From NCBI GenBank assembly GCA_002269645.1, contig NIVC01000221.1, positions 124,001 to 188,000 on the forward strand: a stretch of 64,000 bases of DNA, given 5' to 3'. The notes beneath the pieces are model-generated. The model saw nothing but the letters and a program-made list of their open reading frames with translations, was not told the DNA's origin and did not search any database. Shown here piece after piece: positions 5,453 through 64,000 of this stretch. Both the position numbers and the translations under genes were made by a program. The stretch comes from Macrostomum lignano. Lineage: Eukaryota. Position 1 is the first letter of the stretch. Each line of letters opens with the position of its first letter.

Positions 5453-5493
5453 CTGATTGTCTCCTCGCTGGCAGCTCTCAAAGCTCCCTGCTA

Positions 5494-6063
<570 letters not shown>

Positions 6064-14237: not shown

Positions 14238-14308
14238 CCGACTACGACACACCCAAGACAACCGCTTTTTCGAGAACGACTTCGGCCAGCGACTACGGCG
14301 AGTTCAAT

Positions 14309-18832: not shown

Positions 18833-19266
18833 AAGCCTGAGTTCGACGCCCGGTTGCGCCTGACGAAGGAGCAGCGGAACCTGCTCGGATACTACGAGAA
18901 CCTGCAGGAGGACAACGGCCTGCTGCTGATTGACCTGTCCGATGGCCAGCAGCCGCCAAAGGTTGTTCTGCCTGAGGCCCTTGACGCCCAGGTGCTCCAG
19001 GAGCTCCACAGTTCGCCACTGTGTGGACACCTCGGCGAGACGAAGACGTTACTGCGGCTACGAGAACGGTTCTGGAGACCCGGATTAGCCCGTGCTACCA
19101 AGACCTTCATCAGTAAGTGCCGCACCTGCCTTGAAAGTAAATCGCGACGGCGAGAAAGAGTTCCGGTCCAGAGCTTCCCAGTCTGCGAAGTTCTGGGTAG
19201 AATCCACTGTGATGTAGTGGACCAATCGCGCAGAAAAGCAAGAGCGGCAACCGCTACATCCTGACC

Positions 19267-27640: not shown

Positions 27641-27734
27641 AGATTTCTGCGATACGATACTTTAAAGCTTGAAATTTCAAAAAAGCATCGAGAGCGCAAA
27701 ATCAAAGATGCAATAAAACCTCAAGAACTCTTAC

Positions 27735-28221
27735 CTGCCGAGACACCCAGCCCATGTGCTCAGGGTACTGATGAGTGAGCAGGGCCAGCAGGGCGGTCAC
27801 GGTGCACAGCACGGCTATAAACAGGATGAAGAATGGCAGCTCCTTCTTGGGAAACACTGACAGATCGTGCTGGCTGGGCAGGAGCTCTCTATCCGCCGCC
27901 TCGGTGCACAGCGGGTAGGGATAGAACAGGTTGCCCTTCTCTAACGGGTAGGGGATCAGGCGGAATGTGCCCTCCCAGGTGCTGTGCAGCAGCTGCAGTG
28001 CGCCGTCAACCCGTTTCCAGTGCCGCAGGTGGTTGAATGCGTACGAGATGGCCTCCGAGTCGCCGCGCTTCAGAATGTGCTCGGGCGGCAAGATCAAAGG
28101 CTTCATCTCTAGCAGGTATTTGGGGACGTGTGGGTTGAACTCGACAGCTCGGTGGACAGCCTCAACTGCGGCCATCTCTGCCGAACTCAGGCCCTTCTTG
28201 GACGCCGCGTCCGGGGAGAAC
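27735..28221 (-). CDS. ST7: ST7 homologue, exon 6
   Basis: [57 protein letters not shown]...[10 protein letters not shown]; GT-AG boundaries and phases are consistent. Confidence 0.97.
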
Positions 28222-28267
28222 CTGCGATTGCAAATTGAGGAGCTGGTGACTGACCGCGGCTTTGTGC

Positions 28268-28519
<252 letters not shown>

Positions 28520-28768
28520 CAACAGCCACACAAGTCATATAATATGATTAACTGATCAACAGACTGCTGGAACCCGCCTCAAAACAGATTACACGATAAT
28601 ATTTAATTTTCAAACTTATCCATCCACACAAAAACAATCATTTTAATTATTTCAAAGCGACTGATGGACGGCCAAGCCTCAATACCGTGCACAATATAAC
28701 AAAGGGAATCGTGCATAGAGCAGACACAGAGCAGAGTTACTACAGAGAGAAAAACTCAGGCCACTCAC

Positions 28769-28841
28769 TTGTCTGCCACAAATCTAGCCTTGAGTAGAGC
28801 CGCCGTGTAGCAAATGGTTGCCGATTTGGGATATGTGATGT
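28769..28841 (-). CDS. ST7: ST7 homologue, exon 5
   Basis: [25 protein letters not shown]; 73 nt, phase 1 in and phase 2 out. Confidence 0.93.
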
Positions 28842-29019
28842 CTGCAATGGGGCCGGGTTGCCATGCGCTTAGCTAGGCGTGTAAACTGCATGCATTCAGA
28901 GGGCAAGCCAAATACCTTGCATTCATTGAGTTAGTATTGAGAAATCAGGATAATCCCTTTTGAACAGTTTTAGAATAGAGATAATAATACTAAAGAAGGG
29001 ATTTTAGACTGAAAGAATA

Positions 29020-30020
29020 ATACCTCAGGGATTTAGAATGGGAAAATTATTCCTAGAGGATTTATGATGGGGAATTATACCCGACAGAATTAGAACGGGG
29101 AAATTTTACCCGACAGAATTAGAACGGGGAAATTTTACCCGACAGAATTAGAATGGGGGAATTATGATTTAGAACGATGGGGAATTATACCCGAATGATT
29201 TAGAACGATGGGGAATTATACCTCAATGATTTAGAATGATGGGCAATTAAAACAGACAAAATTAGAATGGGGGAATTATACTTGGAGGATTTAGAATGGG
29301 GGGATTATACCTAAGGGATTTAGAATGGGGTAGCTATACCTGAGGATTTAGAATGGGGGAATTATACCTGAGGGATTTAGAATAGGATAATTATACCTGG
29401 AAGATTTAGAATGGGGGAATTATGATTCAGAACGATGGGGAATTATACCCGAAAGATTTAGAATGATGGACAACTATAACAGACAGAATTAGAATGGGGG
29501 AATTATACTTGGAGGATTTAGAATGGGGGGATTATACCTAAGGGATTTAGAATGGGGGGATTATACCTAAGGGATTTAGAATGGGGGAACTATATCTGAG
29601 GGATTTAGAATGGGGTAGCTATACCTGAGGGATTTAGAATAGGATAATTATACCTGGAAGATTTAGAATGGGGGAATTATGATTCAGAACGATGGGGAAT
29701 TATACCCGAAAGATTTAAAACGATGGGGAATTATACCCGAAAGATTTAGAACGATGGGGAATTATACCCGAATGATTTAAAACGATGGGGAATTATACCC
29801 GAATGATTTAGAACGATGGGGAATTATACCCGAAAGATTTAGAACGATGGGGAATTATACCCGAAAGATTTAGAATGATGGGGAATTATACCCGAAAGAT
29901 TTAGAATGAAGGGGAATTATACCCGAAAGATTTAGAATGATGGGGAATTATACCCGAATGATTTAGAATAATGGGGAATTATACCAGAATGATTTATAAT
30001 GATGGGGAATTATACCCGAT
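29020..30020. repeat. 28-31-nt minisatellite (ATTTAGAACGATGGGGAATTATACCCGAAAG) in ST7 intron 4
   Basis: Directly visible. Confidence 0.93.
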
Positions 30021-30094
30021 AAATTCAGAAAGAGAATAATTCCAAAAGAATAAAATAGACACAGTTTAACATTAAGAACATGAGCAGGACTCAC

Positions 30095-30541
30095 CATCAT
30101 ACTTCGCCAGAAATGCCTGAGCATCAGCGTACTGCTCAGTTTCAAAATAGCACTCAATAAGATTCTCGTGTATATTAAACAAATTGAGGCTGGGATACTC
30201 TTTGATAAGATCCTTCATCATTTTGATTGCCTCCTTGAGTCGGCCCAGCTTCCTAGCGCACATGGCTAAGCGCCTGCGCACGTAGATAAACACGTTGGTG
30301 TCGCGTCTGTGCAGGGACTCGTGGTTGCCGCTGTGGTGCTGCTGCTGCTGCGACCTCCGGAACGAGGCCTCAGCTGATTTGTAGGCCTGCCGCAACAGCT
30401 TTTCAACCTCGAGCACGGTGGAGCACTCCTCCTCAGCTAGGAGTATCATGGCCGGTGCGCAGTCGGGGTTCTTCTCCAGGGCCTCCTTGGCCTTTTTGAT
30501 TCGCTCAGATGGACTGCGCTCCCGCCAGGCCAGCTGCATGA
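30095..30541 (-). CDS. ST7: ST7 homologue, exon 4
   Basis: IMQLAWRER...ILLAEEE...HRRDTNVFIYVRRRLAMCARKLGR...FNIHENL...FLAKYD. Confidence 0.97.
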
Positions 30542-30554
30542 CTGCGGGGGCGAG

Positions 30555-31100
30555 TTCGGGAGCTTGGGGTCAAGGGAGCTTCGGAAGTGGGTCAAGAGAG
30601 TCGGGTGTGGGTCAAGGAAGAGCCGGAAGTGGGTCAAGGAAGAGTCGGAAGTGGGTCAAGGGAGCTTCGGAAGTGGGTCAAGAGAGTCGGGTGTGGGTCA
30701 AGGAAGAGCCGGAAGTGGGTCAAGTGAGTCGAAAGTGGGTCAAGTGAAAGTCGGAAGTGGGTCAAGGGAGAGTTGGAAGTGGGTCAAGGAAGAGTCGGAA
30801 GTGGGTCAAGGGAGAGTCGGAAGTGGGTCAAGTGAGTCGAAAGTGGGTCAAGTGAGAGTCGGAAGTGGGTCAAGGGAGAGTTGGAAGTGGGTCAAGGGAG
30901 AGTCGGAAGTGGGTCAAGTGAGTCGAAAGTGGGTCAAGTGAGAGTCGGAATTGGGTCAAGGGAGCTTCGGAAGTGGGTTAAGGGAGAGCCGGAAGTGGGT
31001 CAAGGGAGAGTCGGAAGTGGGTCAAGGGAGAGTCAGAAGTGGGTTAAGGGAGAGCCGGAAGTGGGTCAAGGGAGACCCGGAAGTGGGTCAAGGGAGTCAG
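30555..31100. repeat. 22-nt minisatellite (GGAGAGTCGGAAGTGGGTCAAG) in ST7 intron 3
   Basis: Directly visible. Confidence 0.93.
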
Positions 31101-31185
31101 TCGTGTGGAGTGCAGTTGCAAGGTGTTGAGATGGACGCTCAAGGATATATATTGGCCATAAATATTAATCAAAAGTGTAACTCAC

Positions 31186-31356
31186 TTTCATACTCCGGCT
31201 TGCCATTGTCTGCCTCGCAGATGAAGAATGTTTGATGATCCTGTGCCGACAGATTCATATCGTAATAGGTGAGAGGCTCCAGGTTGGTCACCTCTTTGTA
31301 GCGCTGGTATTCGGCACCGCGGAATAAACTGTAGGGATTGCGCCATACCTTGCACT
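31186..31356 (-). CDS. ST7: ST7 homologue, exon 3 (alternative in-frame acceptor at 31374)
   Basis: [17 protein letters not shown]...[19 protein letters not shown]. Confidence 0.95.
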
Positions 31357-31381
31357 CTGCGGATTGGGGTGGGGCTGCGGG

Positions 31382-31426
31382 TAGATAGATAGATAGATAG
31401 ACAGATAGACAGATAGATTGATAGAC

Positions 31427-31487
<61 letters not shown>

Positions 31488-31520
31488 GACAGATAGACAG
31501 ATAGATTGATAGACAGATAG

Positions 31521-31551
<31 letters not shown>

Positions 31552-31590
31552 GACAGATAGACAGATAGATTGATAGACAGATAGATAGAC

Positions 31591-31632
<42 letters not shown>

Positions 31633-31650
31633 ACAGATAGATTGATAGAC

Positions 31651-31719
<69 letters not shown>

Positions 31720-31730
31720 GACAGATAGAC

Positions 31731-31781
<51 letters not shown>

Positions 31782-31914
31782 CAGATAGATAGATTGATAG
31801 ACAGATAGATAGATAGATAAATAGACAGACAGATAGATAGATAGATTGATAGACAGATAGATAGATAGATTGATAGACAGATAGATAGATAGATAAATAG
31901 ACAGATAGATAGAT
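31382..31914. repeat. (GATA/GACA)n microsatellite filling ST7 intron 2
   Basis: Directly visible. Confidence 0.95.
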
Positions 31915-31933
31915 GGGCGGATTCCACACTCAC

Positions 31934-32084
31934 CCTGAATGCTATTCTGGTTGTTGTTGCCAGACTCTCCATACTCAATGGACTCATCATCGTCTGCTCC
32001 ACCCAGCAGCGGGCTGATATGAGTCAGCGAGATCTGCTCAATGAAGGATGTGCCGTACTTTTTGAAGTACCACCATTCGAAGAT
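31934..32084 (-). CDS. ST7: ST7 homologue, exon 2
   Basis: [29 protein letters not shown]; 151 nt. Confidence 0.95.
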
Positions 32085-37512: not shown

Positions 37513-40500
37513 TCCTATATACTAAAAATGAGTTGTCTGTATGTGGGTAGGTATGCGATAGATTTCAGAAAAAATGGCTCAACCGATTTTCTTCAAACTT
37601 GCACCATTCGATCAGAAATTTTCCTGGGACGGTACATGCATCTTGGCTAAGAAATTGCTCAATTTTAAAGGGATTAAATATTCGAAAAACATGCTTTTTT
37701 GCAAAGGTCAAGCAAAAATTTCGACTTGAAATGCATTGTAAGAATGCTAGAGAAAAAACTGACTGGCTGAATTTCAATTGTGATAAAGATTGCATCACAA
37801 CAAGGTGAAAACAGTGCCACAGAAACGCACACAAGACTTGATTAAAATTGCGTAACAATATTGCTAACTTAAATTAAGACTGATACTGGCTGACTGAGAA
37901 ATTGATTATGTCATAAATTTTTACTCTAACCGACTTGCTGTAAGAATTGAATTATAAGAGCCACAATTCATGTGCTCCAATTGAAGAAAGATAGCCTAGA
38001 TGCGAACAGACTGGACTGCTAATGTAGCGACCTGGGTTCGAATCTTGGTAGCGCAAAATGATTTTTTTATTAAAACACCTTAAAAACAAAAAACTGCTAA
38101 ACATAAAAGAAGCGCAATGTCAAACATACAAAAGCCACCATGTCAAACATAAAAGAGCCACCATTTCGAACAAAAAAAGAGTTACCATTAAGAACATTAA
38201 AGAGCCACCATGTCGAACATTAAAGAGCCACCTTATCAAACATTAAAGAGCCACCATGTCGAACATTAAAGAGCCACCATGTCGAAACATTAAAGAGCCA
38301 CCATGTCAAACATAAAACAGACACCATTAAGAACATTAAAGAGCCACCATGGCGAACATTAAAAAGCCACCATGTCAAACATTAAAGAGCCACCATTTCA
38401 AACCTAAAAGAGCCACCATGTCGAACATTAAAGAGCCACCTTATCAAACATTAAAGAGCCACCATGTCGAACATAAAAGATCTACCATGTAGAACATAAA
38501 AGAGTCACCATGTCAAACATTAAAGAGCCACCATGTAAAACATTAAAGAGCCACCATTTCGAACATTATTGAGCCACCATGTCCGACATTAAAGAGCCAC
38601 CATATCAAACATAAAAGAACTACCATGTCAAACATTAAAGAGCCACCATGTCGAACATAAAAGGGCCACCATGTCAAATATTAAAAAGCCACCATGTCAA
38701 ACATTAAAGAGCCACCATGCCAAACATTAAAGAGCCAGCATGTCAAACATTTAAGAGCCACCATGTCGAACATTATTGAGCCACCATGTCAGACATTAAA
38801 GAGCCACCATGCCAAACATAAAAGAGCCACCATATCAAACATAAAAGAACTAACATGTCAAACATTAAAGAGCCACCATGTCGAACATTATTGAGCCACC
38901 ATGTCGAACATAAAAGAGCCACCATGCCAAACATAAAAGAGCCGCCATGTCAAACATAAAAAAGCCACCATGTCAACCATAAAAGAACCACCACGTCAAG
39001 CATATACATTACTCCATGTCAAACATTAAAGAGCCACAATGTCAAACACAAAAGAGCCACCATGTCAAACATAGAAGAGACACCATGTCGAACAACTAAG
39101 CCACCATGTCAAACATAACAGAGACACCATGTCAAACATTAAAGAGCCACCATGTCAAATATTAAAGAACCACGATGTCAATCATTAAAGAGCCACTATG
39201 TCAAACATATACGTGACTCCATGTCAAACATTAAAGAGCTACCATGTCAAACATAGAAGAGCCACCATGTCAAACATAAAAAGAAGTGTCATGCCAAACA
39301 AAATGGAGCCACTATAAAGCTAAGGAAATTATTGCACTAGCTACTTGATGTCTGGTGGATGCTTGCTATTTAAGGATGGATACTTGCTATCAGGGGGATG
39401 CTTGCTATCTGAGTGATGCTTGCTATTGGGGGAGGGATGCTTGCTATCGGAAGAATGCTTGCTATCTGGGGTAACTTGCTATTGGGGGATGCTTGCTCTT
39501 GGGGAGTGGAGGGTACTTGCTATCTGAGAGGGGGTTGCTAGCTATCTATAAGGATTCTTTGTATCCAGGGATGCTTGCTATCTGGGGGATGGTTGCATGC
39601 TGTCTGGGGATGGTTGCATGCTGTCTAGGGATGCTTGCATGCTGTCTGGGGATGCTTGCATGCTGTCTGGGGATGCTTGCTATCTGGGCGATTCTTGCTA
39701 TCTGGGAGATGCTTGCTATCTGGGGGATGCTTGCATGCTGTCTGGGGATGCTTGCTATCTGGGGGATGCTTGCGTGCTGTCTGGGGATGCTTGCTATATC
39801 TGGGGGATTCGTGCTATCTGGGAGATGCTTGCATGCTGTCTGGGGATGCTTGCTATCTGGGGGATTCTTGCTATTTGGGGGATGCTTGCTATCTGGGCGA
39901 TTCTTGCTATCTGGGAGATGCTTGCTATCTGGGGGATGCTTGCATGCTGTCTGGGGATGCTTGCTATCTGGGGGATTCTTGCTATCTGGGGGATGCTTGC
40001 GTGCTGTCTGGGGATGCTTGCGTGCTGTCTGGGGGATTCGTGCTATCTGGGAGATGCTTGCATGCTATCTGGGGATGCTTGCTATATCTGGGGGATTCGT
40101 GCTATCTGGGAGATGCTTGCATGCTGTCTGGGGATGCTTGCTATCTGGGGGATGCTTGCGTGCTGTCTGGGGATGCTTGCTATCTGGGAGATTCGTGCTA
40201 TCTGGGAGATGCTTGCATGCTGTCTGGGGATGCTTGCTATCTGGGGGATGCTTGCTATCTGGGGATGCTTGCGTGCTGTCTGGGGATGCTTGCTATATCT
40301 GGGGGATTCGTGCTATCTGGGAGATGCTTGCATGCTGTCTAGGGATGCTTGCTATCTGGGGGATTCGTGCTATCTGGAAGATGCTTGCATGCTGTCTGGG
40401 GATGCTTGCTATCTGGGGGATTCGTGCTATTTGGGAGATGCTTGCATGCTATCTGGGAGATGCTTGCATGCTATCTGGGAGATGCTTGCATGCTGTCTGG

Positions 40501-40632
40501 GGATGTTTTCTTTACAGATGGAATGTCTGTTGTCTTTGTGAAAGCTTTATTTCGCTGTCTTTTTGTTACTTTTAGAGAACAGATATTCTATTTAGAATTT
40601 AGATGTCCCCCATCGGGGGCGAAGATTGCTAG
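37513..40632 (+). mobile_element. Helitron unit 1
   Basis: About 600-bp head, 23-nt array (about 38100-39310), 18-nt GGGGGATGCTTGCTATCT array (about 39355-40500), hairpin and CTAG. Confidence 0.85.
37992..38068 (+). ncRNA. tRNA-derived Pol III-type cassette in the Helitron head (copies near 35307, 41104, 45020, 48439)
   Basis: A-box TAGCCTAGATG, GGACTGCTAAT (tRNA-Ser GCT anticodon-loop-like), B-box GGTTCGAATC, then a T-run of 7 or more. It does not fold as a full cloverleaf. Confidence 0.55.
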
Positions 40633-43600: not shown

Positions 43601-44541
43601 TATCGAACATTAAAGAGCCACCATGTCTAACAGTAAAAAGCCACCATGTCGAACAATAAAGGGCCACCATGTAAAACATTAAAAAGCCACCATGTCGAAC
43701 ATTAAAGAGCCACCATGTCAAACATTAAAGATCCACCATGTCAAACATAGAAGAGCCACCATGTCAAGCATAGAAGAGCCACCATGTCTAACATTAAATA
43801 GCCACTATGTCGAACATTAAAGAGCCACTATGTCTAACATTAAAGAGCCACCATGTCTAACAGTAAAAAGCCGCCATGTCGAACATAGGAGACGCAATTT
43901 TAAACGTAAAAAGAAGCGTCATGCCAATCACAAAGGAGCCATTATAAAGCTAAGGAAATTGTTGCACTTGCTACTTATTGTCCGGTGGATGCTTGCTATT
44001 TAAAGATCAATACTTGCTATCAATTGGTTGCTTGCTATCTGGGGTGCTTGCTATCTTGGGGTGCTTGCTATCACTTGGTTGCTTGCTATCAATTGGTTGC
44101 TTGCTATCTGGGGTGCTTGCTATCTGGGGGTGCTTGCTATCTGGGGGTGCTTGCTATCTGGGGGTGCTTGCCATCTGGGAGAGCCTGCTATCTGGGGGTG
44201 CTTGCTATCTGGGGTGCTTGCTATCTGGGGGTGCCTGCTATCTGGGGGTGCTTGCTATCTTGGGGTGCTTGCTATCTGGGGGTACTTGCTATCTGGGGGT
44301 GCCTGCTATCTGGGGGTGCTTGCTATCTGGGGGTGCTTGCTATCTGGGGTGCTTGCTATCTGGGGGTGCTTGCTAACTGGGGGGATGCTTGCTGTCTTAG
44401 GATGTTTTCTTTTTGCATTGCACTTCATCTGAGCAGTTTTTCTATTGACTATGTGAAGGCTTTGTTTGGCCATCTTATTGATACTTGTAGAGAACAGAGA
44501 TTGTATCTAGATGTCCCCCATCGGGGGGCGAAGATTGCTAG
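40633..44541 (+). mobile_element. Helitron unit 2 (contains a solo LTR)
   Basis: Direct CTAG|TC junctions on both sides; same modular layout as unit 1. Confidence 0.85.
42866..43311 (+). mobile_element. Solo LTR (446 bp) inserted in the 23-nt minisatellite
   Basis: TGAA...TTCA termini; 4-bp TSD AAAG (42862-42865 and 43312-43315). The empty site restores CATTAAAG-AGCCACC. TATA-like TATAAAAT at 43147. Confidence 0.8.
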
Positions 44542-47500
44542 TCCTATATACTAAAAATGAAATGTCTGTAACTAACTAGCTATGCGATAGATTTCAGAAA
44601 AAATGGCTCAACCGATTTTCTTCAAACTTGCACCATTCGATCAGAAATGTTCCTGGGACGGTACATGTATCTTGGCTAAGAAATTGCTCAATGTTAAAGG
44701 GATTAAATATTCGAAAAACATGCTTTTTTGCAAAGGTCAAGCCAAATTTTTGACTTGAAATGCATTGTAAGAATGCTAGAGAAAAAACTGACTGGCTGAA
44801 TTACGATTGTGATAAAGATTGCATCACAACAAGGTGAAAACAGTGCCACAGAAACGCACACAAGACTTCATTGAAATTGCGTAACCATATTGCTAACTTG
44901 AATTGAGACTGATACTGGCTGACTGAGAAATTGATTATGTCATAACTTTTTACTCTTACCGACTTGCTATAAGTATTGAATTATAGGGCCACAAGTCATG
45001 TTCTCCAATTGAAAAGAGATAGCCGGATGCAAACAGACTGGAATGCTAATGTAGCGACCTTGGTTCGAATCTTAGTGGTGAAAAATGTTTTTTTTATTAA
45101 AACACGTTAAAAAACACAAAATTCTCAACATTAAAGAGCCACCATGTCGAAACATTAAAGAGCCACCATTTCAAACATTAAAGAGCCACAATGTCAAACA
45201 TTAAAGAGCCACCATGTCGAACATAAAAGAGCCACCATATCAAACATACAAGAGTTACCATTTCAAACCTAAAAGAGCCACCATGTCGAACATTAAAAAG
45301 CCACCACGTCAAACATTAAAGAGCCGCCAGGTCAAACATAAAACAGACACCATTAAGAACATTAAAGAGCCACCATGTCGAACATTAAAGAGCCACCATG
45401 TCAAACATAAAACAGCCACCATTTCGAAAATTAAAGAGCCACCATTTTAAACATTAAAGAGCCACCTTGTCAAATATTAAAGAGCCACAATGTCAAACAT
45501 TAAAGAGCCACCTTATCAAACATTAAAGAGCCACCATGTCAAACATTAAAGAGCCACCATGTAAAACATTAAAGAGCCACCATGTCGAACATAAAAGAGG
45601 TACCATGTCAAACATTAAAGAGCCACCAGGTCAAACATGAAAGTGCCACCATGTCAAATATTAAAAAGCCACCATGTCAAACATTAAAGAGCCACCAGGT
45701 CAAACATGAAAGTGCCACCAGGTCAAACATATACATGACTCCATGTCAAACATTAAAGAGCCACCATGTCGAACATAAAAGGGCCACCATGTCAAATATT
45801 AAAGAGCCACCATGTCAAACATTAAAGAGCCACCAGGTCAAACATGAAAGTGCCACCATGTAAAACATTAAAGAGCCACCATGTCAAACATTAAAGAGCC
45901 ACCAGGTCAAACATATACATGACTCCATGTCAAACATTAAAGAGCCACCATGTCGAACATAAAAGGGCCACCATGTCAAATATTAAAGAGCCACCATGTC
46001 AAACATTAAAGAGCCACCAGGTCAAACATGAAAGTGCCACCATGTAAAACATTAAAGAGCCACCATGTCGAACATTTAAGAAGCACCATGTCAAACATAA
46101 AATAGCCACCATGTGAAACATATAGGTGACTCCATGTAAAACATTAAAGAGCTACCATACCAGACATATACATGACTCCATGTCAAACATATACGTGACT
46201 CCATGTTAGACATTTAAGAGCCACCATGTCGAACATTAAAGAGCCAACGTGTTAAAAATACAAGAGCCACCAGGTCAAACATATATATGACTCCATGTCA
46301 AACATTAAAGAGCCACCATGTCGAACATAAAAGGGCCACCATGTCAAATATTAAAGAGCCACCATGTCAAACATTTAAGAGCCACCATGTCAAACATATA
46401 CATGACTCTATGTCAAACGTTAAAGAGACACCATGTCAAACATTACAGAGCCACCATGTCAAACATTTAAGAGCCACCAGGTCAAACATGAAAGTGCCAC
46501 CATGTAAAACATTAAAGAGCCACCATGTCAAACATATACGTAACTCCATGTCAAACATTGAAGAGACCCCATGTCAAACATTAAAGAGCCACCACGTCGA
46601 ACATAAAAGAGCCACCATGTAAAACATATACGTAACTCCATGTCAAACATTGAAGCGACACCATGTCGAACATAAAAGAGCCACCATGTCGAACATTAAA
46701 GAGCCACCATGTCGAACATAAAAGAGCTACCATGTCAAACATTAAAGAGCCACCATGTTAAACATAAAAGAGCCATCATGTCAAACATATAAGTGACTTT
46801 ATGTCGAACATTAAAGAGCCACCATGTCTAACATTAAAGAGCCACCATGTCCAACATTAAAGAGCCACCATGTCAAAAATTAAAGAGCCACCATGTCTAT
46901 CATTAAAGAGCCATCATGTCAAACATTAAAGAGCTACTTTGTCTAACATTAAAGAGCCACCATGTCAAACATTAAAGAGCTACTTTGTCTAACATTAAAG
47001 AGCCACCATGTCAAACATTAAAGAGCCATCATGCCAAACATTAAAGAGCCACCATGTCAAACATAAAAGAGCCACCTTTTTGAACATTAAAAAGCCACTT
47101 TGTAAAACATAGAAGAGCCCCCATGTCAAACATAGAAGAGCCCCCATGTCAAACATAGAAGAGCCCCCATGTCAAACATAGAAGAGCCCCCATGTCAAAC
47201 ATAGAAGAGCCACTATGTCAGACATTGAAAAGCCACCGTATCAAACATAAAAGAGTTACCATGTACGAGCGTAGAACATAAAAGAGCCACCCTGTTAAAC
47301 AAAAAGATACACAATTTCAAACGTAAAAGTAAGCGAATTTTAAAGGAGCCGCTATAATGCTAAGGAAATTGTCGCACTAGCTACTTATTGTCTGGTGGAT
47401 GCTTGCTATTTGGGGATGCTATCTATCTTGGGGATGCTTGCTATCTGGGGGATGCTTGCTATCTGGGGGATGCTTGCTATCTGGGGGATGCTTGCTATCT

Positions 47501-47962
47501 GGGGGATGCTTGCTATCTGGGGGATGCTTGCTATCTGGGGGATGCTTGCTATCTGGGGGATGCTTGCTATCTGGGGATGCTTGCTATCTGAGGGATGCTT
47601 GCTTTCTGGGGGATGCTTGCTATCTGGGGATGCTTGCTATCTGGGGGATGCTTGCTATCTGGGGGATGCTTGCTATCTGAGGGATGCTTGCTATCTTGGG
47701 GATGCTTGCTATCTGGGGGATGCTTGCAATCTGGGGGATGCTTGCTATCTGGGGGATGCTTGCCATCTTGGGGATGCTTGCTATCTAGGGGATGCTTGCT
47801 ATCTGGGGGATGCTTGCAGTCTTGGGATGATTTCTTTTTGCAATGCACTTCATTTGAGCAGTTTGTCTGTTGTCTTTTTGAAGGATTTTTGGCTGTCTTT
47901 TTGTTACTTTAGAAAACAGAGATTCTATCCAGATGTCCCCCATCGGGGGCGAAGATTGCTAG
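44542..47962 (+). mobile_element. Helitron unit 3
   Basis: Same layout; 23-nt array about 45125-47300 and 18-nt array about 47395-47825. Confidence 0.85.
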
Positions 47963-50900
47963 TATATACTAAAAATGAGTTGTCTGTGGGTAGGTAGGTA
48001 GGTATGCGATAGATTTCAGAAAAAATGGCTCAACCAATTTTCTTCAAACTTGCACCATTCGATCAGAAATTTTCCTGGGACGGTACATGCATCTTGGCTA
48101 AGAAATTGCTCAATATTAAAGGGATTAAATATTCGAAAAAACATGCTTTTTTGCAAAGGTCAAGCAGCTCTTTCGACCTGAAATGCATTGTAAGAATGCT
48201 AGAGAAAAAACTGACTGACTAAATTCCAATTGTGATAAGGATTACATCACAACCAGTTGAAAACAGTGCCGAAGAAATGCACAAAAAACTTGATTTAAAT
48301 TGCGTAACCAATAACTTAAATTGACACTGATACTGGCTGACTGAGAAATTGATTATGTCATAACTTTTTAATCTAATCAACTTGCTGTAAAAATTGAATT
48401 ATAAGGGCCACAATTCACGTTCTCCAATTAAAAAGAGATAGCCCAGATGCGAACAGACTGGAATGCTAATGTAGCGACCTGGGTTCGAATCTTAGTAGTG
48501 CAAAATAATTTTTTATTAAAAAACCTTGAAAAGACGAAACAGCTAAACATAAAAGAAACACAATGTCAAACATACCAGTGGCACCATGTCGAACATCAAA
48601 GAGCCACCATGTCAAATATTAAAGAGCCACCATATCAAACAGAAAAGAGCCACCATGTCAAACATTAAAGAGCCACAATGTCGAACATTAAAGAGCCACC
48701 ATGTCAAACATTAAAGAGCCACCATGTCAAACATAAAAGGGCCACCATGTCAAACATTAAAGAGCCATCATGTCAAACATTAAAGAGCCACCATGTAAAA
48801 AATTTAAGAGCCACCATGTCAAACATATATGTGACTTTATGTCAAACATTAAAGAGCCACCATGAAGAACATTAAAGAGCCACCACGTCAAACATTAAAG
48901 AGCCACCATGTCAAACATAAAAGAGCCACCATGTCAAACATAAAAGAGCCATCATGTCAAATATTAAAGAGCCACTATGTCAAACATAAGAGAGCCACCA
49001 TGTCAAACATAAAAGGGCCACCATGTCAAACATTAAAGAGCCATCATGTCAAACATTAAAGAGCCACTATGTCAAACATAAAAGAGCCACCATGTCAAAC
49101 ATAAAAGAGCCACCATGTCAAACATTAAAGAGCCACCATGTCGAACATTAAAGAGCCACCATGTCTGACATATATATGACTCATTGTTAAACATTAAAGA
49201 GCCATCATGTCATACATAAAAGAGCCACCATGTCAAACATTAAAGAGCCACCATGTCAAAAATTAAACAGCCACCATGTCTAACATTAAACAGCCACCAT
49301 GTCTTACATTAAAGAGCCCCCATGTCGAACATTAATAGCCACCATTTCTCACATTTTAGAGCCACCATGTCGAAGATTAAAGAGCCACCATGTCAAACAT
49401 TAAAGAGCCTCCATGTCAAATATTAAAGAGCCACCATTTCAAACATTAAGAGCCATCATTACAGACATTAAGGTGCCACAAGGTCAAACATCAAAGAGCC
49501 ACCATGTCTAAAATTTATGAGTCACCATGTTAAGTATATTCGTGACTCCATGTCAAACATAAAAGGACCAACATGTCAAACATTAAAGAGCCACCATGTC
49601 AAGCATAAAAGGACCACCATGTCGAACATTAAAGTGGCACCATGTCAAACATTAAAGAGCCACCATGTCAAATATTAAAGAGCCACAATGTCAAACATTA
49701 AAGAGCCACCATGTCGAACAATAAAGAGCCACCATGTCTAACATATATGTGACTCCATGTCAAACATTAAAGAGCCATCATGTCATACATAAAAGAGCCA
49801 CCATGTCAAGCATAAAAGGACCACCATGTCAAACATTAAAGAGCCACCATGTCAAAAATTAAACAGCCACCATGTCTAACATTAAAAAGCCACAATGTCA
49901 AACATTAAAGAGCCACCATGTCTCACATTAATAGCCACCATGTCTCACATTATAGAGCCACCATGTCAAACATTATAGAGCCACCATGTAAAACATTAAA
50001 GAGCCACCATGTCTAAAATTAACGAGTCACCATGTCAAGTATATTCGTGACTCCATGTCAAACATAGAGAGCCATCATGCCAAACATTAAAGAGCCACCA
50101 TGTCGAAAATAAAAAAGCCACCATGTCAAACATTAAAGAGCCACCATGTCAAACATAAAAGGACCAACATGTCAAACATTAAAGAGCCACCATGTCAAGC
50201 ATAAAATGACCACTATGTCGAACATAAAAGAACCACCATGTCGAACATAAAAGAGCCACCATGTCTTACATTAAAGAGCCCCCATGTCGAACATTAAAGA
50301 GCCACCATGTCTCACATTAATAGCCACCATGTCTCACATTATAGAGCCACCATGTCAAACATTATAGAGCCACCATGTAAAACATTAAAGAGCCACCATG
50401 TCTAAAATTAACGAGTCACCATGTCAAGTATATTCGTGACTCCATGTCAAACATAGAGAGCCATCATGCCAAACATTAAAGAGCCACCATGTCGAAAATA
50501 AAAAAGCCACCATGTCAAACATTAAAGAGCCACCATGTCAAACATAAAAGGACCAACATGTCAAACATTAAAGAGCCACCATGTCAAGCATAAAATGACC
50601 ACTATGTCGAACATAAAAGAACCACCATGTCGAACATAAAAGAGCCACCATGTCTTACATTAAAGAGCCCCCATGTCGAACATTAATAGCCACCATTTCT
50701 CACATTTTAGAGCCACCATGTTGAACTTAAAGAGCCACCATGTCAAACATTAAAGAGCCACCATGTCTAACATATATGTGACTCCATGTCAAACATATAA
50801 AGAGCCATCATGTCATACATAAAAGAGCCACCATGTCAAACATTAAAGAGCCACCATGTCAAAAATTAAACAGCCACCATGTCTAACATTAAAGAGCCAC

Positions 50901-51378
50901 CATGTCAAACAGAAAAGATACACAATTTCAAATGTAAAAGTAAGCGTCATGCCAATTTTAAAGGAGCCACTATAGAGCTAAGGAAATTGTTGCACTAGCT
51001 ACTTATTGTCTGGTGGATGCTTACTATTTAGGGATGCTTGCTATCTGGGGTTGCTTGCTATCCGGGAGGGGGGATGCTTCCTATCTGGGGGATGCTTGCT
51101 ATCTGGGGGATGCTTGCTATTTGGGGGATGCTTGCTATCTGGGAGATGCTTGCTATCTGGGGGATGCTTGCTATCTGGGGGATGCTTGCAATCTGGGGGA
51201 TGCTTGCTATCTGGGGGATGCTTGCTGTCTTGGGATGATTTCTTTTTGCATTACATTTTATTTGAGCAGTTTGTCTGTTGTCTTTGTGAAGGCTTTATTT
51301 CGCTATCTTTTTGTTACTTGTAGAGAACAGAGATTCTATCCAGATGTCCCCCAACGGGGGGGGGGTGAAGATTGCTAG
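47963..51378 (+). mobile_element. Helitron unit 4
   Basis: Head lacks the initial TCC; 23-nt array about 48545-50910 and 18-nt array about 51010-51235; ends CTAG|T. Confidence 0.85.
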
Positions 51379-57266: not shown

Positions 57267-57410
57267 GCAAGCGCTGGCCAGGGCGGGGAGGCACCCAGCG
57301 GATCCAACGCGCAGGCCGTCAATGTGGAGATCAGCGAAGGCAAGAAGGACGAGCGCGAGGGTGTGATCAAGATTCCCGGGAAGGGAGTCTTCCAGACCTA
57401 CATCTTTGAG
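57267..57410 (+). CDS. Unidentified gene, exon 4
   Basis: TCGCAG|ASAGQ...REGVIKIPGKGVFQTYIFE|GTGAGA; 144 nt. Confidence 0.8.
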
Positions 57411-58256
57411 GTGAGAAATGTTTTTTGAGGTTCAACCAAAGATCATATATACGAAAAACAGCGGTCGCGCCTTCCCTATAGCCGAAATACAAAGTGGCCT
57501 ATCTAGGGAATATAGGATCTATTGGTGCAACCAAAATCCGTATCCATCGGTAATTATAATGTCCCGTAACTTCTCATAACTTTTGATGATTTTGAATCCC
57601 ATGGCAACAGTTATTCCATCATTCACTATTATATAAGGATAAAGTAAAGAATGACAACATTAGTTTAACCTATCAGTAATTTACAGGTCTCATTGACTTT
57701 AAATTCGAAAGTAATTTACAATACACTCACGTATTGTACAAGAAGAATGGCGTAGAAAATCCCTGTTGTTTGAGTCATCAACCTTAGGTAGGGACTTAAG
57801 AGTTCCCCCTTCCCTCACAAAAGCTTTGAAACCGCCAACATACATTCATTTCCACTGATCTACCGCTCAGTATCCGTAACTTCTTGTAGCCATATTCTTG
57901 CTTCCTGAACCTTACAATCAGCTGATCGAGTTTATGTCCAATAACAAACCCAAATCTAAATCCTGGATCAACCAAGTTGGACTGAATGTACAATGTTTTG
58001 GGAATTGTTTATTATTATGTTTCCAACACCGTTAAGTGCCAAGAACGAGCGTACATACGAGTACTCGTACGTAAAAAGTGCGGAACAAATTCAAAACAGA
58101 ATTCATGAAAAAATGACAAAATTAAAACTTAAATACAATGAATAAATATTGCTGCATGCAGTTCTCATCAGTTTTGTGCTCTAGCTTCTAGTTTTAGTGC
58201 TCAAGCACTTCTTTTGAGCTCAGCAAACTCACACCGATAGGAATATAACCGGTTTT

Positions 58257-58583
58257 CTATTTTTCATCAGCTGCCGATTTGGCTTCACTCAAGCCTGACT
58301 CAGCTGCCGACTTGGCTTCACCCAGGCCTGACTCAGCTGCCGACTTGGCTTCACCCAGGCCTGACTCAGCTGCCGACTTGGCTTCACCCAGGCCTGACTC
58401 AGCTGCCGACTTGGCTTCGCTCAGGCCTGACTCAGCTGCCGACTTGGCCTCACCCAGGCCTAACTCAGCTGCCGACTTGGCTTCACCCAGGCCTGACTCA
58501 GCTGCCGACTTGGCCTCACTCAGGCCTGACTCAGCTGCCGACTTGGCCTCACTCAGACTCGACTCAGCCGTAGATTTTGCTTG
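58257..58583 (-). repeat. Coding 33-nt repeat, (EAKSAAESGL[G/S]) x9 plus a partial unit
   Basis: In frame up to the stop codon; many unit-to-unit changes are synonymous (GAA/GAG, AGT/AGC). Confidence 0.85.
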
Positions 58584-59779
58584 CTTTAGTTTGCTCAAGA
58601 ACGGATTGAAAGATTTCTTAACCTGCCCTCCGGCCTCTTGGAGACCCTGATCGACGCTGTCAGTTGCTTCGTCGGCTTTATTGTCCAGCTTCATGGCGAT
58701 GGAGGCGATGTTGCCCATGCTGCTGAACTCGTCTGGCGCATTGGCGCTGCCCATATCCGGCAGTACCTTGTCGAGCAGGTGCGAATTCTCGTAGCAAAGC
58801 CGCGATATGTAGTACCGATCCACCAGCCTGGGCGAGTAGTAGTCCGTACCTCCGTTCAGCTGCTCGTAGGTGGTGCCACCGTCGCCACCGATGCAGATAG
58901 TGCAGCAGACCGAGCCCACCGGCTCCCACTTCGGTTGGACAACGAGGCCAAGAATTCGCTGAAAGTAGTGCGACCGGCACTCTTTCCTGCATGATGGCAG
59001 GCAGCGTTTAGTCTTGCAGCAGGTGCACCTGCAGCTGAAGACAAATGGGAACACGTAGAAGATTTGGTGCGAAACGAGCAGCAGACAGAAGACCAAGATG
59101 CAGAGGTTCCCCGTCCAGCCAAGCTCGAAGATGCTGGCCTGCAGCAGCACGCACATGAACCGGTAATCGTCCCGATTCCGTATGACGCACATGAACTCGT
59201 AGCGAATGTCCCGGTGCCGGAAGCCCGGACAGAAGAAGTAGAAACTGATCCAGAACAGCAACAGAGTCACCCTGGCTATCTCGAACAGGTAATAGTTTCT
59301 GGTGTGCTTGCCCTTGCAGTACCACCGTTTAAGCCGCTGTTTGAGTGCGCTGTCTGTGAGCACGTCTGACTTGGACGGCCGGCCCTGCTGCATCCGGCGG
59401 CTCTTGCAGGACTCTGAGTGCACGTGGCTTTCGGCTTGCTCCTCTTTATCTTCCAACAGCTTAAGCGACAAGTCCACCACGAATTGGAGCTGCTCTCTAA
59501 GCTGCTCACCGACAGTTTTGCTCCAGGTGTAGTAGGGCATGTACAGGGACACAGCTTGCAACAGGAACAGCAGCGGAAAGTAGAACTGCAGCAGGTAGTG
59601 GTTTAGGACGCCTTGCAGGTCAGCTGGTATGGTGTGGTTGGGCGTTAGCCTCTGGTCTACGCCCTGCGAGTAGCAGTAGCTCTCTGCGTAAGCCTTGTGC
59701 CTGATGTCTGGGCCCGAGCCGCTAGAGGAGTTGCTCGACCCGCCGCCTCCGCCCTCCGGTGTGCAGCTGATCTTGGCTT
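58257..59779 (-). CDS. Pannexin/innexin-family channel, exon 2 (TM2-TM4, Cys-rich segment, 11-mer repeat tail); acceptor at 59779 or 59806
   Basis: ISC...AYAESYC; FYFPLLFLLQAVSLYMPYYTW; EFMC..FMCVL; TM4; DRYYISRLCYENS. Two Cys in each predicted extracellular loop. Confidence 0.8.
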
Positions 59780-60266
59780 CTGTCAACGGGAAATTTTGGT
59801 GCCTTGCTTAGTAAAGCCATATTTTTCTATTCGAAACACACTGATACTGCGTGCAGCAACCTAGAGTCCAGTACAGGTTAAAGAGCAGCCCATACAGCAA
59901 TCCGACGTCAGCTGACGTTTCCGAGAGTCTATAGACGGGATAATTGGGAATATTATATCAACTTAAGCTGTTGGAGTCCCTAATTATCCTCTTGAATTCT
60001 CTTTTCATTCTCATTCTATCTTTTGTCGCTTTTTTGCCAAATCCAGCTTCCTGGTGTCACTGAGCAGAATGATCCATCATTTATGTACATTGGTTACTTG
60101 GGCTCCACTTTATGAGCTTAAGTTGACAGGCCCTTTAACAAGCTTAACTGTTCACATCGCAAAACTTGGCTTTTGAACCAATGCGAAACTTTGAGCAGAT
60201 GAAGTGTCGAGTGTGATAAGTTCACTCTATTTGTCTGTTCACTAAACATTCTTGATGAAAACTTAC

Positions 60267-60426
60267 TGGCAGCGAAGTTGGCAACAATGATGGCAACAGC
60301 CTGCAAAATTGTCGTCATAAAAGCCATCTTGTTAAAGAACCGGTCCACAGGGAAGCTCGCGTGAACCATATGAGGTCGCACAAACTGCTCAAGAGCAGCC
60401 TGCAGTGTCTGGGCTGCGCCAGCCAT
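60267..60426 (-). CDS. Pannexin/innexin-family channel, exon 1 (N-terminus plus TM1)
   Basis: GAGTC-ATG-G context; MAGAAQTLQAALEQFVRP...FPVDRFFNKMAFMTTILQAVAIIVANFAA; donor A|GTAAG (phase 1) is compatible with both exon-2 acceptors. Confidence 0.75.
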
Positions 60427-61537
60427 GACTCAAATTATTGCTGTTGCTCTACTGGGTAGCAGCTACATGTAAGTCAGCTTGGATATCTCGCTGTTTTATG
60501 GCACTCGAGACTGTCTTCGGTGGCCTCTGCCGATCAAAATGTTCTCGATCTCATTCCGACTACTTGTGGGCGTCTCAACGCTAAAAGCGGGCGCTGCTGC
60601 ATGCACATGATTCGTCTGCAGGGGTGCAAGTTTGCTCCGCTCCCCCTATAGGAGGAAGAGTTGGTCAAGGAAGCCAGGGAGTCCTTCAGAGAACATCTGG
60701 AATGGGAGGCTTTTGTTTACAACTTTGGGACGTACATTTATAGAGATATCAGCTAAAAACTCAGGTCAAAGCTGAATAAACTAACCATTTGTCAGATGGT
60801 CTAAAATATCAGAAAGAAAGATTTTGTTATACTTCGTACTCGTAATTAGCTGAAGCATGCAAGCGATGAAAAATTTCTATCAAAAGTCAAATACCAGTCT
60901 AACTAATTTTACAGTCCTAGGAAATTTACTTTTCAGCACAATTAAACTAAAGATTGAGCTCATATTTAAAATATTATTTGATCCTTACTCAGATCTCTGT
61001 TTCCCCAGAGTTCCACAGTGAGTTGTCCATGTCCGAGAAAGCTAGAAAAGGGAAGCGCGTATCGATTGATTAAATTCTGCCGATCCCAAATTAAGAGTCT
61101 GTCAACATATCGCTAGGGTGAACCTCCAGCCAGGCCATAAAACAGCATAAAACTCCCTCTCCACTGCCCAGCTGTTCTTTAGAGAATAAGAAGAAGTCAC
61201 TTCAACTTGCTCAGCTTGGAGTATAGAGAGAGAGCTAAGGGGGGAGTTGGACGACTTTCACTGTGAATCGTTTTGAGCATAGTCTTATCGCGTGATCTCA
61301 ATAGTGAGTCAATATTTTACTTAAAATCCACTGAGAATGAATTCTCTGCACCATCGTACTCGTACAGTACAATTTGTGGCATTCGGAATTGTACATATCT
61401 TACCGTAACTCTTGGTCCTCTGAGATGTGATCTGAAACCGATGAAATACCTTACCAATGATAGTCTACTCCACCGGTACCATCATCGTTTATTGGCGATT
61501 GATCTCAAATTCGAATAACAATTTGCATCTACGGTAT

Positions 61538-61712
61538 GACATCCCTAACATCCCTGAAATAACTGACTTCCTTGACTTCCCTGAGATCTCTAACATCTCT
61601 GAAACTCTTGAAATCACTGGCATCCCTGACTTCCCTGACATCCCTGACATCCCTGACATCCCTGACATCCCAGAAATCTCAGACATCCCAGAAATTCCTA
61701 AACTTCCCTGAC
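61538..61712. repeat. 9-nt repeat (CATCCCTGA)n
   Basis: Directly visible just upstream of the exon 5 acceptor. Confidence 0.85.
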
Positions 61713-61725
61713 TTCATTTTTACAG

Positions 61726-61839
61726 CACAGGCGCAACGTCCACTGCTACTATGACCCGGATGAATCGGCCTGGATCAAACTGCCGCTCAAATGGGAGCTA
61801 AAAACTGATGTCGCTAAGAAGCTGGTCAGACAGACTCAG
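61726..61839 (+). CDS. Unidentified gene, exon 5
   Basis: TTTACAG|HRRNVHCYYDPDESAWIKLPLKWE...RQTQ|GTAAAA; 114 nt. Confidence 0.8.
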
Positions 61840-61959
61840 GTAAAAAATATTTTTAATAAGCCATACATGTACTTACTCCTTACATTCTTCCATCTCAATC
61901 ACATCCTTCAGTCAGTCTAAAAAATTATGATCCTCACTGAATTTTGAAATCAAACTCTA

Positions 61960-62592
61960 ATCGAACCCGAATCGAACCCTAATCGAACCCTAATCGAACC
62001 TAATCGAGCCCTAATCGAACCCGAATCGAAAACTAACCGAAACCTAATCGTACCCTAATCGGACCCTAATTGAACCATAATCGTACCCTAATCGAACCCT
62101 AATCGAATCATAATCGTACCGTAATCGAAACCTAATCGTACCTTAACCGAACCCCAATCGTACCCTAATTGAACCCTAATTGCACCCTAATTGAACACTA
62201 ATTGAACCCTAATTGAACCCTAATCGTACTCTGATCGAACCTAATCAAAACATTATCGAACCCTATTCGAAACCTAATCTAACCCTAATCAAAGGCTAAT
62301 CAAAACATAATCGAACCCTATTCTAAACCTAATCTAACTCTAATCGGACCCTAATCGAACCCTAATCGTACCTTAATCGAACCTAAATCGAATCCTAATC
62401 GAACCCTAATCGAACCCTAATCGAAACCTAATCGAAACCTAATTGAACCCTAATCGAGATCTAATCGAACCCGAATCGTACCCTAATCGAACCCTAATCA
62501 AAACCTAATCGAAGCCTTTTCGAACCCTAATCGAACCCTCATCAAAACCTAATCGAAACCTATTCGAACCCTAATCAAACCCTAATCGAACT
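61960..62592. repeat. 11-nt repeat (AATCGAACCCT)n
   Basis: Directly visible; fills intron 5. Confidence 0.9.
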
Positions 62593-62602
62593 CCTACCGC
62601 AG

Positions 62603-63384: not shown

Positions 63385-63978
63385 AAGGATGAGTTGCTGA
63401 GATGTCATGGCTCAGTGGGGAGTTGTTGAGATGCCATGGCTCATTGGGGGGAGTTGCTGAGATGTCATAAATCAATGGGAAGTTGCTGAGATGCCATGAC
63501 TCAATAGGGGAGTTGCTGGGATGCCATGGCTCAATAGGGAAGTTGCTGGTACGCCATGGCTCAATGGGAAGTTGCTGGTACGCCATGGCTCAATGGGAAG
63601 TTGCTGAGATGTCATGGCTCAATGGAGAGTTGCTGAGATGCCATGACTCAGTGAGCCATGTGACTCAATGGGTCATGTAACTCAATGAGTCATGTAACTC
63701 AATGAGTCATGTAACTCAATGGGTCATGTAACTCAATGGGTCATGTAACTCAATGGGTCATGTAACTCAATGGGTCATGTAACTCAATGGGTCATGTAAC
63801 TCAATGGGTCATGTAACTCAATGGGTCATGTAACTCAATGGGTCATGTAACTCAATGGGTCATGTAACTCAATGGGTCATGTAACTCAATGGGTCATGTA
63901 ACTCAATGGGTCATGTAACTCAATGGGTCATGTAACTCAATGGGTCATGTAACTCAATGGGTCATGTAACTCAATGGG
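63385..63978. repeat. 29-nt minisatellite followed by a homogeneous 17-nt array (GGGTCATGTAACTCAAT)
   Basis: Directly visible; transition near 63660. Confidence 0.92.
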
Positions 63979-64000
63979 TAGTTCAGTAACTGTAAAGTCT

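Follow-up and report, generated by a model that had tools for sequence, protein, structure and literature searches.

In the textbook view, innexins belong to the non-chordate animals, and the chordates kept a few fast-evolving, glycosylated innexin homologs, the pannexins, and invented the connexins. The gene described here lies on the minus strand, at positions 60426 to 58257, of a 64,000-nucleotide window of the genome of the flatworm Macrostomum lignano (GenBank assembly GCA_002269645.1, contig NIVC01000221.1, positions 124,001 to 188,000 of the forward strand), and its product is a divergent member of the innexin/pannexin superfamily. Macrostomum was not included in a survey of innexin homologs (PMC8769644), which credited lancelets with exactly one such homolog. 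In that survey, sequons for loop glycosylation were common among non-chordate innexins, and several of the innexins whose sites are predicted or proven nevertheless form gap junctions. A different family, the connexin-like domains, has been described from anthozoans, the annelid Owenia, and the brachiopod Lingula, and an ancient origin with widespread loss has been argued for it (10.64898/2026.06.13.731801).

The 560-amino-acid window protein belongs to the innexin/pannexin superfamily, and the comparisons directly supported its placement there as neither a classical innexin nor an ortholog of PANX1 to PANX3. A word-indexed search of 5.8 billion proteins with the window protein returned A0A1I8G5P7 and A0A1I8J165 as the sole entries, both from Macrostomum lignano; the former is 319 amino acids long and 99% identical to the window protein, and the latter is a paralog with 55% identity. 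When the window protein was compared with all PDB sequences, pannexins were the sole matches, with PANX1 found at an E value of 4e-6 over an alignment that extends from extracellular loop 1 to the fourth transmembrane helix (TM4). A two-sequence Macrostomum profile searched against the PDB likewise matched PANX1 and other pannexin chains (E of 3e-7), and INX-6, LRRC8, and CALHM were absent at E ≤ 10. The Pfam scan of the window protein gave no Innexin (PF00876), Pannexin_like (PF12534), Connexin (PF00029), or leucine-rich repeat match at E ≤ 10; bona fide pannexins score just 31 to 45 bits on the Pfam Innexin model. A Foldseek search of the PDB with an AlphaFold2 model of the protein placed PANX1 first (E of 1.6e-6, template modeling score of ∼0.5), followed by PANX2 and LRRC8A/C, with a probability of 1.00 and no innexin among the top 50. 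Three other identities were considered and rejected. A connexin-like protein would conflict with the missing PF00029 match and with Cx43, which reached 12.8 bits (E of 0.4) and was absent with the P0004-clade profile; LRRC8 gave neither a PF12534 nor a leucine-rich repeat match and only 16 bits for LRRC8A with the clade profile; and CALHM was absent from the PDB matches of the Macrostomum profile at E ≤ 10.

The nearest relatives outside Macrostomum came from an exhaustive HMMER scan in which the Macrostomum profile was run against 1.84 billion representative proteins and yielded six of them at E ≤ 0.001. These were the UniProt entry of the protein itself; P0003, a chimeric assembly product with repeated fragments of a true classical innexin; P0004, P0006, and P0007, which derive from ENA metagenome and Logan SRA assemblies and lie on animal-like contigs of up to 1.16 Mb; and P0005, which is Branchiostoma LOC118406090. 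No ordinary flatworm innexin, and no homolog from another flatworm, was found in that scan at the same threshold. The source contigs of the clade-mates were traced to ERZ26695794, SRR3401484, SAMN12856791-97, and SRR10189780. The Branchiostoma floridae protein of LOC118406090 (XP_035661843.1; P0011 in our set) is labeled "uncharacterized protein" by NCBI, and the gene is a second, overlooked innexin-superfamily gene in lancelets. The suggestion of the earlier note on this DNA that the channel might be lineage specific is not supported, given the relatives in Branchiostoma and in further animal sequences. Word-indexed searching yielded no named distant relatives: the six-sequence alignment gave the same two Macrostomum entries and missed its own members, and P0004 gave unannotated relatives only. 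A literature search found no paper describing the clade.

The window protein is just 21 to 25% identical to its clade-mates. In pairwise phmmer comparisons it scored 34 to 49 bits against most of them and 29 bits against the truncated P0024, compared with 12 to 30 bits against fish PANX1 and PANX3 and 10 bits or less against mollusc, Hydra, and ctenophore innexins. A hidden Markov model (HMM) built from the non-flatworm clade-mates gave 102 bits with the window protein and 78 bits with the paralog, whereas the innexin and pannexin HMMs gave 15 to 33 bits. Residues C89, P122, Q128, A129, P135, W139, Y216, C251, C263, W275, N278, D374, and N385, are invariant in the clade, and the window protein retains all family-invariant residues. 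A short extracellular loop 2, the patterns F.C.V...C, W..N in TM4, and D..LI..C.EN, and an aligned loop 1 sequon are features shared within the clade. In hhalign comparisons, the clade aligned with pannexins at a score of 184 (E of 2e-24, 323 columns) and with innexins at 65, and pannexins aligned with innexins at 73. The clade profile searched against the PDB gave PANX2 at 71 bits, PANX1 at 62 to 65, PANX3 at 42, INX-6 at 22.5, LRRC8A at 16, and Cx43 at 12.8 (E of 0.4), and the order was the same, with no connexin match, when the profile was made without the flatworm and lancelet sequences. These results directly support a small and very divergent clade that, as judged from sequence comparison, unites the window protein, LOC118406090, and unannotated animal sequences.

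Trees were constructed by neighbor joining with Scoredist distances, 200 to 300 bootstraps, and three trimming levels, using 23 to 27 sequences. The comparison set, taken from the supplements of PMC8769644, comprised lancelet, lamprey, shark, and zebrafish pannexins, tunicate homologs, and scallop, Hydra, and ctenophore innexins. Bootstrap support was 100% for classical innexins, 98 to 100% for pannexins, 100% for tunicates, and 80 to 88% for the new clade, and the branching order of pannexins, tunicates, and the new clade received 40 to 50%. A grouping of Macrostomum with mollusc innexins received 0% at all three trimming levels. A phylogeny with innexins and pannexins had been proposed in the earlier note as a check; it placed the window protein outside the clade of mollusc, Hydra, and ctenophore innexins (100%) and likewise outside the PANX clade (98 to 100%), in a tree that contains no flatworm innexins. 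The proposed pannexin-type channel in an invertebrate survives as a superfamily member whose clade is nearest to pannexins, but not as a member of the PANX1 to PANX3 clade. Its description as something other than a typical innexin stood throughout, by the missing PF00876 match, the replaced YYQW-P motif, and the 0% bootstrap value with mollusc innexins.

Several further observations concern the members of the comparison set. Tunicate "innexins" were rejected as the identity of the unannotated clade, as they scored only 10 to 22 bits and form a clade of their own. Some labels in PMC8769644 fig2-data3 appear shifted and are unreliable, since Tu_Cin_01, Tu_Cin_02, Tu_Cro_01, and Tu_Cro_02 are lancelet pannexin sequences. 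For P0004, the Pfam Innexin (26.7 bits) and Connexin (26.2 bits) models each gave a sub-threshold match, and no upstream exon was detected within 3 kb. The C-terminal residues of P0004, P0023, and the lancelet protein are S-D-V or S-T-V, reminiscent of a class I PDZ ligand, an ending that the flatworm proteins lack.

The AlphaFold2 model was made from a seven-sequence alignment, with a predicted local distance difference test (pLDDT) score of 62, a predicted template modeling score of 0.58, and values of 75 to 90 in the transmembrane helices. It contains an N-terminal helix, helices at residues 21 to 52, 117 to 170, 197 to 236, and 268 to 301, and strands at residues 57 to 61, 248 to 254, and 258 to 265. 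The model directly supports a predicted topology in which the N-terminal helix, the long loop between TM2 and TM3, and the C-terminal domain are cytoplasmic, and loop 1 (between TM1 and TM2) and loop 2 (between TM3 and TM4) are extracellular. Loop 1 is modeled as a strand and a helix and loop 2 as a β-hairpin, and each extracellular loop has two cysteines, C59 and C89 in loop 1 and C251 and C263 in loop 2, which align with the loop cysteines of PANX1 and are invariant in the clade. Loop 1 spans approximately residues 53 to 116, with its exon 2 part at 59592-59779 (minus strand, as are all features of the gene), and holds C59, C89, a Gly/Ser-rich insert, GGGGGSSNSSSGSG, and the sequons N70-S-S (59732-59724) and N101-H-T (59639-59631). 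Both sequons and the insert had been claimed for the stretch between TM1 and TM2, and they are there. TM2 (59514-59591), with the sequence LQFYFPLLFLLQAVSLYMPYYTW, combines the FP of pannexins with the QA of innexins, and its P122, Q128, A129, P135, and W139 are clade-invariant. TM3 (residues 209 to 236) and loop 2 (residues 237 to 267), the latter a β-hairpin with C251 and C263, are encoded at 59139-59315, and TM4 (residues 268 to 301), which contains IFELGWTGN and the clade-invariant W275 and N278, at 59037-59138.

Beyond TM4, a Cys-rich stretch, SCRCTCCKTKRCLPSCRKECRS, lies beside the membrane (58971-59036). It has 8 Cys in 22 residues, is conserved in the paralog, and is absent from the other clade members; it might, purely by inference, serve as a palmitoylation or metal-binding site. 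The Gly/Ser-rich insert of loop 1 is likewise peculiar to the Macrostomum proteins. The C-terminal motif DRYYISRLCYEN (residues 374 to 385; 58785-58820) corresponds to D..LI...C.EN in the clade-mates and to FCDINILALFCNEN in PANX2. The protein ends in a tail (58260-58580) in which the 11-residue unit AKSAAESGLGE recurs about nine times; the underlying 33-bp tandem array (58267-58568, 94% matches) is confined to the window copy, and the paralog has a single degenerate unit, with the array unexpanded. Weak Pfam Apolipoprotein and Mucin-like matches fall in this tail. The whole motif set quoted by the earlier note was present and aligned with PANX1 by HMMER as it had stated, namely KISC...AYAESYC (C59 and C89), LQFYFPLLFLLQAVSLYMPYYTW, YEFMC...RFMCVLLQASIFELGWTGN (C251 and C263), and DRYYISRLCYEN. 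The tunicate innexin homologs in PMC8769644 fig2-data3 have a DR..FS.LCYEN motif in their TM2-TM3 cytoplasmic loop; DRYYISRLCYEN of the Macrostomum proteins is identical to it at 8 of 12 residues but stands in another location, after TM4.

The window protein thus shares with the chordate pannexins (PANX1 to PANX3 and the lancelet pannexin) the fold of four transmembrane helices, two cysteines per extracellular loop, the pattern ISC...A(Y/F)x(D/E)SYC in loop 1, FP at the start of TM2, IF.L....N in TM4, and D..L..L..EN after TM4, and with PANX2 and PANX3 it also shares the position of the loop 1 sequon. It differs from them in its place outside the PANX clade, its 31 bits on the pannexin HMM, the loss of W74, and the QA in TM2, and further in the Gly/Ser insert of loop 1, the Cys-rich segment after TM4, the tail of 11-mer repeats, and its flatworm host. 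With LOC118406090, P0004, P0015, P0017, P0023, and P0024, its nearest relatives outside Macrostomum, it has the short loop 2 and the aligned loop 1 sequon in common, but those proteins are without the Cys-rich segment and the repeat tail. Classical innexins (PF00876; C. elegans INX-6 and mollusc, Hydra, and ctenophore proteins) are of the same superfamily and topology and have two cysteines per loop and the P and QA in TM2. In contrast to the innexins, the window protein has LQFYFP in place of YYQW(V/I)P at the start of TM2, and the FPR.T.C...Q.C.LP.N..NEK pattern is missing from its far shorter loop 2; INX-6 was unmatched by the flatworm profile and reached 22.5 bits with the clade profile. 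The pore domain of LRRC8 has a similar fold (Foldseek E of ∼5e-6, template modeling score of ∼0.5), but the C terminus of the window protein consists of the Cys-rich segment and then 11-mer repeats, with no leucine-rich repeat domain. The connexin-like domains (10.64898/2026.06.13.731801) resemble the new clade as a patchy large-pore channel family outside the "expected" phyla, and the clade-mate P0004 has a sub-threshold Pfam Connexin match; they are nonetheless another family, and the window gene has no Connexin match and is unfused to NACHT or LRR domains.

The gene had been described as having two exons and about 560 codons, and that structure was found intact: a coding sequence of 1683 nucleotides encodes 560 amino acids with no break in frame. 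Exon 1 (60426-60267, 160 nucleotides) begins with the ATG at 60426, encodes the N-terminal helix (residues 2 to 16) and TM1 (approximately residues 21 to 52), as delimited in the AlphaFold2 model, and ends one base into codon 54 at the donor ...GCTGCCA/GTAAGT. Intron 1 (60266-59780, 487 nucleotides, GTAAGT...ACAG, phase 1) stands directly before the first loop 1 cysteine, and its acceptor reads ...TTGACAG. Exon 2 (59779-58257, 1523 nucleotides) encodes loop 1, TM2, TM3, TM4, the cytoplasmic C-terminal domain, and the repeat tail, and closes with the TAG at 58259-58257; its open frame of 509 codons is far above chance expectation. An AATAAA, a candidate poly(A) signal, lies about 245 nucleotides 3' of the stop (58008-58013). 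A0A1I8G5P7, which bears the automatic UniProt name "Innexin," has an exon join (..NFAAKAKISC..) identical to that of the window gene, and so gives independent support for the splice.

The protein of the A0A1I8J165 paralog has a longer form in GenBank (PAA56329.1, 497 amino acids), which extends past the end of the UniProt models and is named "hypothetical protein." The C-terminal domain of the window protein is kept in it (ECRSHYFQRILGLVVQPK ... DRYYIS(R/Q)LCYENSHLLD ... DEFSSMGN(I/L)ASIAM), and the full 560-amino-acid reading is thereby justified. The paralog was found at two loci of GCA_002269645.1 (NIVC01001368.1 and NIVC01002633.1) and adjoins an AAA-ATPase gene at both. It has four exons. 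Its intron 1 is at the same codon as that of the window gene, with the same acceptor context, CAG/AAGCCAAG, and its two downstream introns are missing from the window gene, a difference that represents a 3'-biased intron loss in the latter. The ratio of nonsynonymous to synonymous substitution (dN/dS) between the two genes was 0.22 over 423 aligned codons, with dS near saturation, which indicates that both copies are under purifying selection, the window gene included. On the Pfam Innexin model the paralog scored 16.4 to 18.3 bits, under the 25-bit gathering cutoff. That the two copies of the paralog are near-identical and on different contigs fits the duplication of the M. lignano genome. The last exon of the paralog, as translated from the locus DNA, is inexact relative to the GenBank proteins.

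A sequon at the position aligned with N70 was present in six of the seven clade members that cover the region (NSS, NGS, NCS, NTS, NLS, and NNT); the N101 sequon was found only in the window copy. N70 is located between the first cysteine and the helix of loop 1, and the PANX3 N71 and PANX2 N86 sites occupy the same loop segment (PMC8769644). The conserved sequon supports a glycosylated loop 1 and suggests, by analogy, a single-membrane channel, the latter link being weakened by the sequons that are common in innexins, some of which are still junctional (PMC8769644). It had been put down as established that glycosylated loops favor non-junctional channels; this is a tendency, and innexins bearing sequons can form gap junctions (PMC8769644). 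Our best inference, drawn by analogy with the pannexins, is a non-junctional large-pore channel function. The gene product is probably one subunit of a large-pore channel in the innexin/pannexin superfamily, and solved pannexin and innexin structures suggest that such subunits would assemble into a ring, probably heptameric like that of pannexins, with the cysteine pairs of both loops forming disulfides. A glycan on the conserved loop 1 sequon would disfavor head-to-head docking, and the channel, presumably not a gap junction, would then act across one membrane only and let ATP, small molecules, or ions through. More speculatively, cytoplasmic regulation or anchoring may be the role of the Cys-rich segment and of the tail of 11-mer repeats.

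Taken as a whole, the locus is probably best explained as encoding a large-pore channel subunit that belongs to a divergent, pannexin-leaning clade. A number of results count against that explanation. By itself, the window protein scored 31 bits on a small pannexin HMM and 33 bits on an innexin HMM, with the innexin score concentrated in the region of loop 1 and TM2. At the few columns that separate the pannexin and innexin consensus it scored 0 and 0 by identity and 6 versus 8 by similarity class, which is no pannexin bias, and in hhalign the Macrostomum pair scored 73.5 against pannexins (96% probability) and 61 against innexins (94%). The pore-lining W74 of PANX1 is not retained (I79), although the adjacent R75 is (R80), and the confidence of the AlphaFold2 model is modest (pLDDT of 62). 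The tree is small, distance-based, and without flatworm innexins, and its divergent groups all lie on one side, as long-branch attraction would also yield. Loop sequons, for their part, do not exclude gap junctions on their own (PMC8769644). Since the window protein is about equidistant on the HMMs and shows no column bias, the pannexin leaning comes mainly via the clade-mates. A greater likeness to chordate pannexins than to innexins is thus solid for the clade as a whole and weak for the window protein alone: the PDB matches to pannexins only, the phmmer scores (12 to 30 bits against fish PANX1 and PANX3, 10 or less against innexins), and the clade profile (62 to 71 versus 22.5 bits) speak for it, and the 31 versus 33 bits and the unbiased columns speak against it. 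Alternatively, the protein could have arisen from ordinary flatworm innexins by fast evolution specific to Macrostomum and be grouped with lancelet, unannotated, and pannexin sequences by long-branch attraction; the 33 versus 31 bits on the innexin and pannexin HMMs, the retained innexin-type QA in TM2, the weak Pfam Innexin match of the paralog (16 to 18 bits), the UniProt name "Innexin," the lack of flatworm innexins in the tree, and the failure of the 1.84-billion-protein HMMER scan to detect a homolog in other flatworms would all fit such an origin. We consider it unlikely, because the 78 to 102 bits obtained with the HMM built from the non-flatworm clade-mates, against 15 to 33 on the innexin and pannexin HMMs, and the hhalign score of 137 between the Macrostomum pair and the other clade members are positive similarity and not mere shared divergence. 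The features common to the clade point the same way: the invariant residues, the short loop 2, F.C.V...C, W..N in TM4, the aligned loop 1 sequon, and D..LI..C.EN, which is also like FCDINILALFCNEN in PANX2, argue against a pure artifact. Mollusc innexins never attracted the Macrostomum proteins at any of the three trimming levels (0% bootstrap), and the long-branched true innexins, from ctenophores and Mo_Mye_14, remained in the innexin clade.

The preferred reading, a channel subunit of the pannexin-leaning clade, has two further competitors, which concern function. The subunit might form gap junctions like classical innexins despite its loop sequons; a precedent is set by several innexins that form functional gap junctions although their loops have glycosylation sites, predicted or proven (PMC8769644), and the fold and the loop cysteines are the same as those of classical innexins. 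Indirect evidence makes this quite improbable, in that the loop 1 sequon is conserved clade-wide at the PANX2/PANX3 position, the nearest characterized relatives are pannexins, and loop 2 is short. It is harder still to credit a non-working gene, whether a duplicate in decay or an intronic frame that is open by chance. Two introns of the paralog are missing and a 33-bp repeat has recently expanded in the 3' coding part, as might be seen in such a case, but the frame of 560 codons is unbroken, the splice sites are canonical, an AATAAA signal follows, the dN/dS against the paralog is 0.22, every family-invariant residue is kept, and UniProt contains a protein with 99% identity.

The gene lies antisense within another gene model, as had been claimed, and the exon borders of the host bear this out. 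The whole minus-strand gene is contained in the 4315-nucleotide GT-AG intron 4 (57411-61725) of a plus-strand model, between exon 4 (57267-57410), which ends GAG/GTGAGA, and exon 5 (61726-61839), which starts after TTTACAG/CAC. The host model has seven open exons with GT-AG borders. It is supported by these splice signals and open frames alone, and the argument from frame is weakened because each exon length is a multiple of 3 nucleotides. Pfam and PDB searches with the host model gave nothing significant, and Chibby (E of 0.12) and RPC8 (E of 0.21) were rejected as its identity, both being non-significant. The host gene is absent from both paralog loci, which were fetched, so the nesting is not conserved. 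Tandem repeats are dense in the introns of the host gene (61537-61712, 61948-62596, and 63391-63979), with units of 9 bp (19 copies), 11 bp (59 copies), 29/60 bp, and 17 bp (19.6 copies at 98% identity), and the 9-bp array adjoins the acceptor of host exon 5.

Other features of the window lie at a distance from the gene. Exons of a thioredoxin-glutathione-reductase-type gene, with a Glutaredoxin domain and then Pyr_redox_2, occupy 38-6054 on the minus strand, and the introns are full of long minisatellites. A long terminal repeat retrotransposon-type element (14222-21888, plus strand) is GC-rich (56 to 64%) and apparently largely intact, and its frames encode a gag-like protein with a CCHC knuckle, a reverse transcriptase and RNase H (PF00078 and PF17917), and an integrase (PF00665). 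A homolog of ST7 (suppression of tumorigenicity 7) is found at 27702-32002 on the minus strand, two exons of which scored 219 and 275 bits on PF04184. Four related minisatellite arrays on the plus strand (39493-40575, 43978-44554, 47395-47997, and 51006-51378) are each followed by a similar unique tail (..ISFC..LSS.S..FVKALF....CREQRFYPDVP.RG..), which suggests a dispersed repeat-carrying element.

A farther-reaching reading, which we offer tentatively, is that the window gene is a protostome member of an ancient, unrecognized third clade, pannexin-like and with a glycosylated loop 1, which would predate the split of protostomes and deuterostomes and survive sporadically in Macrostomum, lancelets, and some other animals. 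If the grouping were artifactual, the gene would be an unusually divergent flatworm innexin. If the third-clade reading is true, pannexin-type channels would be no chordate invention, and lancelets would have more than one innexin homolog. With the grouping true, the pannexin-like lineage would be older than the chordates and would have been lost many times, in parallel to what has been argued for connexin-like domains (10.64898/2026.06.13.731801), and the lancelet homolog count, which underpins the "bottleneck" argument of PMC8769644, would be revised. Macrostomum lignano, which is regenerative and can be made transgenic, would then be a tractable organism in which to study the role of a pannexin-like channel beside classical innexins.

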